Under the pieces are notes generated by a model. It was given only the letters and a program-made list of their open reading frames with translations. It was not told the origin of the DNA and ran no database searches. This document shows, one piece after another, positions 10,007-30,982 of a DNA stretch of 64,000 nucleotides (the stretch's first letter is position 1; each line of letters opens with the position of its first letter). Location of the stretch: contig OZ116707.1 in assembly GCA_964199315.1 (NCBI GenBank), positions 7,750,001-7,814,000 of the forward strand. Direction: 5' to 3'. Both the position numbers and the translations under genes were made by a program. The stretch is from Orbicella franksi. Lineage: Eukaryota.

Positions 10007-10754
10007 TTTAAAAACATGTAAATAGTTTAATAGAGAATTGATAAATAAAGAAAGAAATAAATGAATATATGAATGAATGAGTTTTTATTTTTAGAAATGA
10101 TTTGCGTGTATTTTTAAAGATTACACCCATTATCATACAAGTAAAAACACTTCAATTATTACCCCACAAGCTATTATACTTATTTTTCCAAAGTATAAAC
10201 GTAATTAAAAGTCTCCAAAGTAGTATAACCCCTTTAGTCGTAGTACTCGTGACTCGAATGGGCCGAAAGTTAGGCTCGAATGAAATTGATGGGATAAAAA
10301 TAGACTTTATATCATCAAGATGCGCATGCATACGAATTATTAAAGAACATTACATCATTACATCATCTAAATCTAAATTTAGAAACATATTTCATTTTTA
10401 CACCATAAAAAGAATTAGGTGTAACTGTATCTTAGCAACGATCATAATATTTTGATTCGTGCATCATTCTTACATCATTTTTCTATTTTAAAGTCACCTT
10501 GAACAAACTTCGAAAGACTTCCTATGGTCAAGGTACAAATTCCTGTGACCGTATAAGGAGGTAAACATTACGTGTAATTACAAAAATAGCTACTCACGTG
10601 GTCATTGACATCATAACCGCGAGAGACTAGGATCTAGTTTATAATGTATAAAGGAGTAGCGAAGTTCTAGCTAATAACCATTTACTCTCGAGCGAGCTAC
10701 TGTATACATCTCTAAAAGAGAAGAGAAGAGAACAGAGAATAGAGAACAGAAAAC

Positions 10755-11372
10755 ATGTCTAGAACCGCCGAGACCATTGAGACCATTAAGACTACTGAAA
10801 CCAGAGACAACAACTACAACCGAGACTACTTCTGGTAAGAATAAGTAAATTAGAATCGATAAATTTTATAATAATAATAATAATAATAGTATTAGTAATA
10901 TGAGAATTGAGATTTGATTTAATTTTTTTTTTTTTAAATTCCAGAAACGCTTAAAAAGAGAAAGAATTCTCATCTGGGGCAGGAAAAAGAAGAAAAAGAG
11001 AAGAATGAAAACAAAAGAAGGAAATTAGATCCCTCTGAGACTGACAAGGACAAGAAAGAAGAGGGAGAACTGGATGACGATGACGACGGTGATGACGAAA
11101 TCATTGATCCACCAAAGGCATGGGTAGAGGAGTTATGGGATAGACCCGATATCCTCAAAAAATTCCATGACGGAAGGAAAAATATCGAAGATCATATAAA
11201 TCATATGATAAACCAAGTAGTCCTTGACTTCGACTTTGTTGTCGTTCACACTACATTTCTTTTCTATTCCATGCAGTTCGAGCAGAGTGAAAATTTCTTC
11301 ACGGATGATATGCAAGGCAACCTATATGTACAATTGAGTAAATATAGACTGCAATATTTTGGAGATGGATGA
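10755..11372 (+). CDS. Island gene D: spliced hypothetical protein with an NLS-like KRRK and an acidic tract; start uncertain
   Basis: Intron 10835-10944 (GTAAGA...poly-T aaattccAG). Exon 10945-11372 is open without an early ATG, so the ORF track misses it: ...NKRRKLDPSETDKDKKEEGELDDDDDGDDEIIDPPKAWVEELW... The ATG at 10755 is out of frame with the spliced exon. Confidence 0.5.
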
Positions 11373-26879: not shown

Positions 26880-27870
26880 AAGAGACGAAAAAATCAAGAA
26901 AACAAAATACAACAACAAGAGTGGGCTAAATTCATGTTCAGAATTGAGCACTCTACAATAATCCACAATGGAAAATTCAGCACTGCTTATTGTACAAAGA
27001 ATATTCCTCTCCTATCACAGAATGACTTCTTGCAACGCCTAATTGAAAAAAGCGAGCAGTTTCTACGAAGAATGTGCTGGAAAGCTTACTTCTTCCTCAA
27101 CCCTGGTACTTCTACCTCCTCCAAAGACACATACGGCTTCAAGTCTACCAAGAACCCCACTCCAATTGATGAGCTAAAGGAATTTGAAGACAACATGCTA
27201 AAGATGGTGCAATTGTCAAAATTCAAACAAGTTAACGACTCTTTTCTAAACAAGCTCAATGATGACGCTGAACGCATTAAAAAGGAAACCAAACTACTCA
27301 TTGCCACTGACAAAACAAGCCGACCTGCCAACTAATCAACCCCACTAAATCCAAGTTAAGCAAAATCAGCAAAGAAATCCTTGACAGAGTCAACAGCAAA
27401 ATGACAAGAGCATCCAAATTCAACCAATAGAAAAACTACCTCCATGATCAAGTGGTTCGTAGAATTCTACCCCTCCATCAGCCAAGACCTTCTGAACAGA
27501 GCACTTGACTTTGCCTCAGCCTACAACAACATCACAAACGACAAACAAAACATCATCATACATGCTAAAAATTTAATCCCAATACACAAACAACAAACAT
27601 GGCATTACTATGGGTAGGTACGACAGCGCTGAGGTAAGTGAGATAGTAGGAAGTTTCTTGCTTTCCCAATGACAAAACCTTGATGTCAACATCAGACTCT
27701 TAGCCATTACAACAGCTCAAGTAAGAGATGTAATCTCTGTCTCAAAGAGAAACTTTTAATCATCTGTCGACCTGATCTGTCATCACTTAACAAACGTAAC
27801 AAACTTGTATCTTCTTGCCACCACAGAAACAAAGCGTCCCTACGTAACAACTAAACATTTAAAGATTTAA
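26880..27870 (+). mobile_element. Penelope-like element, 5' part with internal deletions
   Basis: LIEKSEQFLRRMCWKAYFFL...GFKSTKNP...IATDKT; duplicated at ~60850-61470. Confidence 0.75.
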
Positions 27871-27944
27871 ATTCTCCGCACCAGTTCTTATGTAACCTTC
27901 CATGGTATTTAACTGATAGTTATGAATATTCTTGTCATTAAAAT

Positions 27945-27983
27945 CCCCGGAAGAGTGAGCGATCACAAAACAGGCTTGTCAGG
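27945..27983 (+). ncRNA. Degenerate type I hammerhead ribozyme in a Penelope terminal repeat
   Basis: cc-CGGAAGA-gtga(gcga)tcac-AAAA-caggcttgtc-aggat: stems intact, core mutated from CUGAAGA and GAAA. Confidence 0.55.
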
Positions 27984-28129
27984 ATGAAAGTGTAGTTCTT
28001 TCTATTTTCAATATATATTGTGCTCTACTTTATTGTATCAAGCACTGTACTATGGGAAAATCGAAAGACAGACTTTCTATATATAATATATATGCTAGGC
28101 TTAAAAAACAAGAACTAGCTCTTGTTCAT

Positions 28130-29423
28130 ATGTTTTGACATTTGTGAGTTTCATTCCTTAATAACCGAGAAGTTGCTTTCTAAAGCGTTTGACTTTGCCT
28201 CTAAGTACTGCCAAATAACCAGCCATGAGCATGAGATCATCCTGCATGGAAGAAGAAATCAGCAAACAATCAATTTGATGTCACCATGGGATCATTTGAT
28301 GGAGCTGAAACATGTAAATTGGTTGGATGCTACCTTTTGTCTCTCCTCACCAAGAAGTATGGCCAAAACATCGGCTTATACCGAGACGACGGACTGGCAG
28401 CCTTCAAAGTTAATTCACGAGAAATAGAAAAGATCAAAAAAGGGATATGCAAAGTCTTCGGTGATGAGTTGAAGATCACAGTCAAAGCAAACACCCCCAG
28501 GTCAATTTCTTAGACATCATGCTTGACCTCAGAAGTGAGAAATTCTACCCTTACATAAGAGGGCAACATCCCATTATATGTCCATAAAGAATCCAACCAC
28601 CCACCATCCATCCTCAAGAACATTCCTGAATCTATTAACAAAAGGCTATCTGAAATATTGAATATAGAATGCTTCGATAGTGCTAAAGGCATTTATCAGG
28701 AAGCACTTGACAAAAGTGGCTACCGCTATAATCTCTCTTTCACACCGAGCCAGGCATCCCACCCACAGAATACTTGACAAAGAAATATCTTGTGGTTTAA
28801 CCAGCCATTTAGGAAGAGCATGGCAACAAGCATCGGAAAATGTTTCCTTTTACTTATTGATAAACATTTCCCTAAATCTAACCCCATTCATAAAATTTTT
28901 AACCGTGACACATTAAAATTAAGCTACAGCTGCATGGGTAACATCAAAACAATAACATCTAATCATAACAAAACTGAAATTAACAAATTCACATGCACCA
29001 ACAATCAAAAGAAGAACTGTAATTGCCAGAAACCCAACTCATGCCCTATGGATGGACACTGTAATGCGGAAAATGAATTCATCACTACAATCATGAAGGA
29101 AACATAATTCGGACTTTGTGACACTACTTTTAAATTAAGATACAGGTACTATATATATTCGTAATGAGCAGTACAAACATGCTACCGAGCTTAGTAAGTA
29201 CATGTGGAGCCTAAAAGATCAGAAAATTGCATATGACACTAAATGGCAGAAAGTAAAACAAGCTAGGTCCTATTTGAATGTAGCTAAGAGATGTAATTTG
29301 TGTTTGTGGGAGAAATTTTTCATATTATGCAGGCCAGAAACATCAAATCTCAACAGCAGAAATGAACTCGCATCGGGTTGTAGACATGCTAGGAAATTTC
29401 TACTGAAAAACGTCCTTATTTAG
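28130..29423 (+). mobile_element. Penelope-like element, RT C-terminus and GIY-YIG region, decayed
   Basis: [14 protein letters not shown]...GLYRDDGL; [10 protein letters not shown]; [12 protein letters not shown]...[13 protein letters not shown]. Confidence 0.85.
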
Positions 29424-29870
29424 TTAGTGATGAGGATCACATGTGAACCAAACTCTTGTGATAATTCACTTTGACCAGGTAAGTTAATAAATATCATATC
29501 ATTGTCCTTTCGGCTTCGGCTCTGAACTTGGCAGGAGTAGCGGAGCGCTGTATATTTAGTATTATCCGAATGAGCGCATTTCTTGTGGTAAGCATTCTTC
29601 GAATAGCGGTGGCACTGGTAAACTTCAAGTATCGATCAATAGACCAGTTGGGGTGTGCTGTTGCTTTATTTAATAAAAATAATTGAACATGAAAATATAC
29701 TCGTTCATTTTAATAAGAAATGCAGTTAAGGTCTTCCCTTACTGAACTCAAACGTTAACAGTTGAAGTTAGAGTATATAAAAAATTATTTAGAATACAAA
29801 ATCATCAATTTAAAACTTTAGTTTACATGTGGCGTTGACAAAAATCCATGATATTTTTTGTTGCAAACAG

Positions 29871-30780
29871 AATACTCAAGAAACAGAATTCAAGAAGTTC
29901 CTGATGGCTGTCCATGCCAGTAATGTAGAAGAACTTCAATATTACAATGTTGCAGTAATTTACAACAAAGAATGTACAGAGTTCAATGTGCAGGAGGTTA
30001 TGGAGGGGAAGCTACATTATGTACAAGTGGCATTCTGGTTTGACACAAGAGAAAAGAAAGCACAAGGTAATTTCAGTTTGTAAATTACAAATAAAATAGC
30101 TCTTTTACATCTCTCTCGAAAATGGGAGCTTACCCTCCCCCATAGAAAGAAAAAAATCAGAAATTAAAACCTCTACAAAAGATGCTGTTAAAAGTATGTT
30201 CAAAATACCCTATTTCCTAAATATAAATGTATTTGTTGCTTGACTGCCCCCTAATAAGAAAGCATTATTACCACTTGTAGTGATTTTTAGAGCCATCTGC
30301 TACTGATTCTTTCTTCCTTCCTTTTTGACAAAAGTGTCGCAATTGTCTCATGGACAGAGATTTAAAAATTATCTAACAGCTGACTCGGAAACATAAATTG
30401 TTTAACAGGGCACCTCCTCGAGAACAGCCTTACGCCACTCCTCATTGGCCATTGGGTCGCAGAGGGACAAGTCACAGGAAGATGCTGCCAATCACAGAAT
30501 GCAAACACATCAAACGTTTTTTCCTGCAAAGGCATTGATATGGGAAGAATTCCTGTGGAGCTGGTAGCCACAATAATAGAGAAGTTCAGCTTTGAAAGCC
30601 AGTGGGTTTTAGACCTAACTAACACAATTGGTAAGTCACACTACGGTGGTGGTTCACTTAAATATCTAGGGTTTCAACTTATTTGATGTAGGCTCAGTTT
30701 TCATCACTAAGAGTGCCGTTAAGTCTACAAGAAACTGTTTACGATTCCTTGGGAAGGAGACTTCAGGGAACACTTTGTGA
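29871..30780 (+). CDS. Spliced fragment resembling a beta-class N6/N4 amino-DNA-methyltransferase with a degenerate SAM-binding motif; exons 29871-30066, 30409-30630, 30692-30780
   Basis: The three exons splice in frame with GT-AG introns and give FWFDTREKKAQGHLLENSLTPLLIGHW...SNVF...RIPVELVATIIEKFSFESQWVLDLTNTIGSVFITKSAVKSTRNCL. By eye this follows the W.K...E.IL / KP.EL...I...S..GD.VLD.F.GSG....A....R pattern. Confidence 0.55.
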
Positions 30781-30839
30781 CCTTTTTTGCCTGTATTTTT
30801 GCATACAAATGATGTTAAAATTTAAAAGAAGAAAGAAAC

Positions 30840-30982
30840 TTGTGGTGCCGTGACCTAAAGGTAGACATGAGGAGAAATGGCTACACATGGGGAGAATTGC
30901 AACGACTGGCTCAGGACCATGATGACTGGAGGGTGCTTATTAGTGGCCTTTGCCCCAGAAGGGGCTACAGGCAATGATGATA
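30840..30982 (+). mobile_element. RTE-clade LINE extreme 3' end
   Basis: Translates ...DMRRNGYTWGELQRLAQDHDDWRVLISGLCPRRG, followed by a gatgat-type tail. Confidence 0.55.

Follow-up and report, generated by a model that had tools for sequence, protein, structure and literature searches.

A probable two-exon relic in a coral genome and its remote kinship to PF01555-type amino-methyltransferases

The window analysed here, a stretch of 64,000 nucleotides (C10:7750001-7814000) within a 497-Mb coral genome, contains two consecutive exons of a methylase-like gene, preceded by fragments of a transposon-like element and followed by the beginning of an intron (Table 1; C-numbered loci are contigs of the same genome). 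Both exons are still open, and their splice signals are intact. Exon 1 stands behind an AG at 29869-70 that follows a pyrimidine run (preceding letters ...ttttttgttgcaaacag), and it ends in the donor CAAG/GTAA, with G/GT at 30066/67 in phase 1. Exon 2 is bounded by the acceptor ...gtttaacag/ and the donor ATTG/GTAAGT. Encoded in exon 2 are the variable loop, the helix ahead of the SAM-binding strand (PVELVATIIEKFSF), strand 1, which reads WVLDL, and TNTI-G, the degenerate first half of motif I. Judging from the family alignment, exon 1 would lie midway in the methylase-like domain, past the motif IV position and ahead of the variable region; its pairwise alignment with P0028, a protein of Ptychodera, gives no match. 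The motif strings listed in the original prediction, namely SNVF, RIPVELVATIIEKFSFESQWVLD, LTNTIG, and GS..A.K..RNC, are all present in the window pieces.

Table 1. Features of the locus (positions within the window) and further copies of the family in the same genome (positions on contigs).
Feature	Position	Strand	Description
Transposon-like element fragments	27456-29450	+	left part of the 3.4-kb duplicated block; no Pfam match
Remnant of ancestral intron upstream of exon 1	29453-29870	+	shared with P8
Exon 1 relic	29871-30066	+	65 codons plus 1 base; phase-1 donor
Intron 1	30067-30408	+	342 nt, GT..AG, in-frame stops
Exon 2 relic	30409-30630	+	phase 1 at both ends
Retained start of intron 2	30631-30830	+	contains the proposed exon 3 (30692-30780); homology to the sister copy stops at 30830
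Unrelated 45-aa ORF remnant	30840-30977	+	just past the end of homology; no Pfam match
P2 (sister copy)	C10:7.824 Mb		44 kb downstream; exon 2 82% identical in amino acids; true exon 3 present, frameshifted
P8	C10:2505083-2507352 (L036 4083-6352)		decayed paralog closest to the window copy
P3	C10:4.82 Mb		stop in one exon; donor AT, acceptor TT
P4 = P5	C7:16.495 Mb, C9:4.995 Mb		four methylase-like exons, open, with GT-AG
P6	C10:7.335 Mb		in-frame stops
P7	C9:5.297 Mb		second subfamily; open, GT-AG
L019	C10:2.236 Mb		second subfamily
P9	C10:6944029-6948562 (L037 3029-7562)	-	third, divergent subfamily, with a stop; exon 2 about 24% identical to P4

Similarity searches of the coral genome place exon 1 in seven other positions and exon 2 in six others (E 4e-34 to 2e-12 for the latter), and the family is a low-copy one. 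The identity of exon 1 to its paralogs amounts to 92%, 60%, 53%, and 46%, with 88% and 69% in a frameshifted copy. When the distant copies are compared with the window, the alignment is confined to the exons, and the introns are unalignable. By this pattern of sequence conservation, exons 1 and 2 are real, far beyond chance open reading frames, and they are kept in at least eight other loci of the genome.

Three exons joined in frame had been proposed for this locus. The pieces exist and do join in frame, and the first two are conserved; the third, which continues the frame and has a TGA at its end, is intron 2 sequence. It falls inside intron 2 of the sister copy P2 and of the annotated model P0002 (L021), and across it P2 differs from the window by a 53-bp indel and a 1-bp indel. 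In P0002, a 117-aa model annotated at the orthologue of the sister copy in another assembly, exon 2 is spliced to an exon located about 700 bp downstream, which reads G-G-I-S-A-G-I-A-A-K-R-N-V-V-C-L... (family type G-[GS]-I-S-A-G-I-A-A-K-R-N-V-V-C-L). The nearest public record, GCA_002042975.1, is one that we take to be Orbicella faveolata. An exon of the same type also follows exon 2 in P3, P4, P7, and the Ptychodera gene, always behind a phase-1 intron that splits the motif I glycine, and it is absent from the whole 64-kb window. The score of the proposed exon 3 peptide against this true exon 3 is equalled by 20-70% of shuffles. On these sequence comparisons the proposed exon 3 is spurious and not a family exon, and its GS...A.K..RNC motif is a product of chance. 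The possibility that it arose by duplication of the true exon 3 and then decayed was rejected as well, as both the peptide and the DNA scores lie within the range of shuffles. Contigs from two RNA runs, derived from other individuals, carry a G inserted after 30690 and a C>G change at 30693; this polymorphism coincides with the acceptor of the proposed exon.

Upstream family exons were found neither in the window nor upstream of the sister copy P2. Instead, the exons are adjoined by fragments of an element present in at least 150 copies, and the locus does lie amid decayed transposons, as the original prediction stated. Element fragments and exons together form the block 27456-30830, which aligns with C10:7821295-7825157 at about 86%. 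From 29453 onward the sequence is shared with P8 (blastn of window 29453-30373 against L036 5701-6655, 86.8% over 961 bp), which is free of the element, and this places the transposon junction near 29450. Remnants of the element's ORF extend over 28119-29423 and finish with its C-terminal tail, and a genome search with the peptide encoded at 28778-29104 scored at least 150 matches; copies of the element often form inverted pairs. An intact copy (L033:1991-4141) carries a 716-aa ORF and none of the family exons; this ORF has no match in Pfam at E 0.01. Its sequence includes a reverse-transcriptase-like motif (YRDDGL), the string NPPF, a Cys-rich stretch, and, as its tail, Y-I-G-L-T...R...H, which resembles GIY-YIG endonucleases. 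The NPPF string was considered as the missing motif IV and discarded, because it belongs to the 716-aa ORF of a high-copy element. On the other side of the locus, the 45-aa ORF remnant may be the C-terminal tail of a retrotransposon ORF2 protein.

Nucleotide identity between the window and the sister copy P2 is 94.9% in exon 1, 90.1% in exon 2, and 93.5% in intron 1. The dN/dS ratio between the two copies, 0.48 on 31 changes, is indistinguishable from neutral, and a value below 1 could leave room for some past constraint. Sequencing runs in which the stretch occurs are labelled coral metagenome. RNA-labelled runs contain about 0.3-0.47 of the words of the stretch, and their coverage of introns and transposon is as even as that of exons. 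The splice junctions that had been predicted are not borne out in the contigs assembled from these runs (metatranscriptome contigs, which drop rare isoforms): splice joints over the locus number zero, and both exon 2 junctions are crossed unspliced, by contigs spanning 30282-30475 and 30572-30795. Two polyA raw-read runs yielded 0 reads, a result that counts as a test only if coral transcripts are present in those runs. The suspicion that this copy is inactive fits what is found, as both ends of the gene are missing and no splicing is seen in the RNA-run contigs.

The remaining copies show various states of preservation. P8 has a ParB-like exon interrupted by a stop, two more exons upstream, and an exon 1 with a frameshift, whose first half is 93% identical; exon 2 was sought at this locus and not found. 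The P4 and P5 loci (C7:16486000-16500050 and C9:4990740-5005000) are identical at about 100% over more than 14 kb on different contigs, which would reflect a segmental duplication of very recent date or else a duplicate introduced by assembly. Other paralogs sit in ordinary multi-exon genes free of the element.

Outside this genome, a profile built from exon 2 of seven copies (A1) was searched against 1.84 billion protein representatives and retrieved 32 short proteins, all of at most 204 aa and mostly unspliced ORF calls on genomic contigs, with no full-length annotated homologue among the 32. Two of them, P0028 (194 aa, Ptychodera flava) and P0029, were matched at E 2.5e-4 and E 3e-4, respectively; a search with P0028 as the query returned solely P0028 itself. 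Two phase-1 intron positions are common to the coral genes and the Ptychodera gene of P0028, which makes a recent bacterial transfer into the coral unlikely, and a recent horizontal gain of the kind known from the bdelloid N4CMT, with which the original prediction had drawn a parallel, is hence improbable here. Upstream of the P0028 gene, L022:4212-4964 holds a long ORF with D-V-E-L-N-P-G-P, a 2A-type ribosome-skipping signature, followed by a coiled-coil-like region; this is probably ORF1 of a non-LTR retrotransposon. On the contig of the family member P0032, nearby called genes (L035:7466-7675, 10494-11363) match THAP and, weakly, a herpesvirus-type alkaline exonuclease (Viral_alk_exo), and with such neighbours this copy may be of viral or mobile surroundings.

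The kinship with amino-methyltransferases is visible only through intermediates. Exons 1 and 2 and the proposed exon 3 of the window give no match to PF01555 at E values up to 10 and no direct match elsewhere in Pfam, so that the HMM check suggested with the original prediction came out negative. No match was obtained for the window peptides in PHROGs and NCBIfam, and single paralog exons gave no usable match in these collections or in Pfam. A profile search of the PDB with the exon 2 alignment returned nothing, and a search of ESM Atlas with window exon 2 gave no usable match. P0028 and P0029, in turn, are matched by PF01555 at 42.2 and 28.7 bits (cut-off 26.7) over profile positions 125-217. 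P0028 also matches phrog_67, annotated as 'DNA methyltransferase' (E 1.2e-12), the solved beta-class enzymes 2zie, DpnA, an N4-cytosine methylase, and M.MboIIA, and, by tblastn, 250 phage DNA methylases. In hhalign comparisons, A1 aligns with P0028 over the whole exon (97% probability, E 9.5e-11), and five spliced family models align with eight phage methylases at 98.5% and E 4e-15. The window clade (window, P3, and P4) aligned with the same eight methylases at 83.9%, E 7.8e-6, and a score of 41.2; the best of the controls, one reversed and 20 column-shuffled, scored 20.8. This match spans 31 columns only (template 183-213), at the helix before the SAM-binding strand, and pairs PVELVATIIEKFSFESQWVLD with HPTQKPV.L...LI......GD.VLD. 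The profile-profile check thus supports what had been proposed from motifs.

Further agreement comes from the genome itself, since a PF01555 scan of all 497 Mb gave three weak matches, and all three fall on family members. In the spliced models the SAM-binding unit stands at the C-terminal end, as it does in permuted beta-class enzymes, and the N-terminal half aligns with phage methylases at low confidence only. An AF2 model of P0028, built on a 15-row alignment, reached pLDDT 48.7, too poor for confirmation of the fold. From these profile links we conclude that an amino-methyltransferase-like domain of the permuted, beta-class PF01555 type is the source of exons 1 and 2, the homology being real and remote, carried by profiles and intermediate sequences. 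The likeness claimed for the locus consequently stands for exons 1 and 2, by profile-profile and transitive links, and falls for the GS...A.K..RNC string, whose scores lie within those of shuffles.

What the family has kept of the enzyme differs between the two halves of the domain. In the window, motif I (F-x-G-x-G) and strand 2 are incomplete, the sequence reading LDLTNTI-G and then stopping, because the exon that carries the remainder is absent. The degeneracy of motif I, noticed in the original prediction, extends over the window clade (LDLT-x-x-x-G); the motif is kept in P7 (LDLCSGAG-SAAVA...VVEKE) and in P0028 (LDACCGTG-SAVIAA...GIDLD). A regular-expression search for (D/N/S)PP(Y/F/W) in all plus-strand frames upstream in the window, as well as in the paralog and Ptychodera loci, located this motif in no family exon, in line with the earlier failure to find a DPPY or SPPY exon upstream. 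Candidate strand-4 positions read EFPK in P7, AEFPEE in Ptychodera, KLEE in P4, and HLQN in P3, an assignment that is uncertain because the N-terminal half aligns with phage enzymes at low confidence.

The apparently open members (C7:16.495 Mb = C9:4.995 Mb, and C9:5.297 Mb) retain the SAM-binding half. If functional, they are more likely to be binding or regulatory pseudo-enzymes than DNA methylases. Full-length paralogs possess in addition an upstream exon with E-[LV]-[IL]-G-G-x-H-R-R, which is missing from the window. ESM Atlas features of this exon point to DUF6551/ParB_N (0.91-0.93), and Pfam, PDB, tblastn against phages, and a genome scan with PF02195 were all negative for it; its AF2 model, at pLDDT 40.4, is too poor for a fold search. 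A ParB-like N-terminal domain in full-length members, which would recall the ParB-methyltransferase fusions of phages and plasmids (ParB/Srx fold with a G-x-x-R/H-R helix cap), is therefore treated here as a lead.

In our opinion, the window probably contains a non-functional relic, namely two consecutive internal exons of a low-copy coral family whose C-terminal domain descends from PF01555-type bacterial or phage methyltransferases. A plausible course of events would begin with the disruption of a W-type gene on the same chromosome upstream of exon 1, near 29450. The block 27456-30830 would then have been duplicated 44 kb away, and the window copy would have lost, or never received, everything past 30830, exon 3 included. 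With no start, no catalytic region, and half a SAM-binding loop, the window piece cannot make a methyltransferase, and we expect it to do nothing.

Three other explanations deserve consideration. The exons could belong to a short expressed gene, in which exons 1 and 2 plus the proposed exon 3 or another cryptic exon encode a truncated methylase-like protein or a regulatory transcript, that is, a domesticated fragment. Open exons with consensus splice sites, the dN/dS of 0.48 against the sister copy, the 117-aa model annotated at that copy's orthologue, and the presence of the stretch's words in RNA-labelled runs (about 0.3-0.47) are all compatible with this. Nevertheless, no start codon or upstream exon is at hand, the RNA contigs run evenly over introns, transposon, and exons with no joint, and the exons are conserved no better than the intron. 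The proposed exon 3, moreover, is unconserved in the sister copy and has a 1-bp insertion polymorphism at its acceptor. We consider such a gene unlikely, and the domestication raised in the original prediction does not suit a duplicate truncated at both its 5' and 3' ends and devoid of splicing evidence. It is still less probable that the resemblance to methyltransferases is due to chance or to a generic helix-strand unit in an unrelated animal family. That the window and coral exons alone give no Pfam match, that the catalytic motif is absent, that the hhalign match of the window clade spans just 31 columns, and that structure prediction failed (pLDDT 48.7) would all be expected in that case. 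Against it stand the chain of significant profile links from A1 through P0028 and P0029 to PF01555, the shuffled and reversed controls (at most 20.8 versus 41.2), and the location of the three best PF01555 matches in 497 Mb on family members. The order and location of the matched elements are also as they should be, the C-terminal end carrying the helix, strand 1, and G-x-G-S...A...R-N-x-V.

Least probable of all, and hardly credible in our view, is that the exons are cargo of the flanking transposon, a methylase-like module such as the MT domain of DIRS1. The joint duplication of element fragment and exons in one 3.4-kb block and the NPPF string in the element's intact ORF copies gave this idea some appeal. 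The numbers speak against it, since the element has at least 150 copies compared with 8 and 7 matches for exons 1 and 2, fewer than ten in each case, and the notion of a transposon-carried homologue fails on this disproportion. The intact 716-aa ORF copy is devoid of such exons, P8 (C10:2.507 Mb) has the sequence from 29453 on but not the element, and the other paralogs occupy ordinary multi-exon genes free of it. DIRS1 MT domains, for their part, are PCIF1-derived and belong to a different group (PMC4738411).

Returning to the relic of a methyltransferase-derived family, the window locus is an ordinary pseudogene fragment, of little importance in itself. A wider reading can be proposed tentatively, as a possibility that we rate slightly below an even chance. 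The fragment may be a fossil of an old metazoan family, represented in corals and a hemichordate by genes with two shared phase-1 introns, that arose from a phage or bacterial beta-class DNA amino-methyltransferase, possibly one fused to a ParB-like domain. The members that look intact (C7:16.495 Mb, C9:5.297 Mb, and the Ptychodera gene encoding P0028) would have exchanged DPPY for other residues and kept the SAM pocket, becoming putative pseudo-enzymes that bind SAM or DNA, or else enzymes of altered chemistry. If true, an intron-bearing, multi-copy family of a coral and a hemichordate would constitute a second, older, and independent animal lineage of the PF01555 fold. The lost catalytic motif would make it a candidate example of how a DNA-modification enzyme of prokaryotes became a protein that binds chromatin or nucleic acids without catalysis, and reports of 6mA or 4mC writers in marine invertebrates should be checked at the level of motifs. 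We regard the family as a moderately interesting animal variant of a known enzyme fold, not previously described as far as our literature search shows; this search, directed at a cnidarian, hemichordate, or other animal PF01555 family, found no relevant description. A survey of eukaryotic adenine methylases by Iyer et al. lists no animal clade of the PF01555 type (PMC4738411).

Compared with known systems, the family shares with PF01555 beta-class enzymes (Vibrio phage VH-8 DNA methylase, TTHA0409 2zie, DpnA 5hek, and M.MboIIA 1g60) the helix before strand 1, strand 1 itself (hydrophobic-VLD), and the SAM-binding end G-x-G-S...A...R-x-x-V-G/C-hydrophobic-E/D, C-terminal in the domain. In contrast to these bacterial and phage enzymes, it consists of animal genes with several introns and without (D/N/S)PP(Y/F/W); in the window clade motif I is degenerate, and the window copy represents the middle of the domain only. 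The closest parallel among animals is the bdelloid N4CMT, as both are of the PF01555 type, contain introns, and reside in animal genomes, and P0028 weakly matches the N4CMT structure 8s9m (E 0.016). N4CMT is an active enzyme in which the catalytic motifs are preserved and a chromodomain is present (PMC8885841, PMC10406627), and Rodriguez et al. described the bdelloid N6_N4 methylase as restricted to bdelloids and without homologues in eukaryotes (PMC8885841). The present family, unlike N4CMT, is found in a coral and a hemichordate, whose genes share intron positions; its catalytic motif is lost, and the parts examined contain no chromodomain.

Disrupted active-site motifs are also known from METTL14 and similar methyltransferase paralogs (Iyer et al., PMC4738411). 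Like METTL14, the family would retain a methyltransferase fold with a degenerate strand-4 catalytic motif, although the METTL14 clade belongs to MT-A70 and not to PF01555. By way of functional speculation, this likeness suggests a structural or binding role for the family. The MT domain of DIRS1, which derives from PCIF1 and is part of an intronless RT/RNase H/tyrosine-recombinase polyprotein of a repeated element (PMC4738411), resembles the window copy in being an inactive methylase-like domain among animal repeats; the coral family differs from it in that its exons are split by conserved introns, its members are low-copy multi-exon genes, and its relatives match PF01555.
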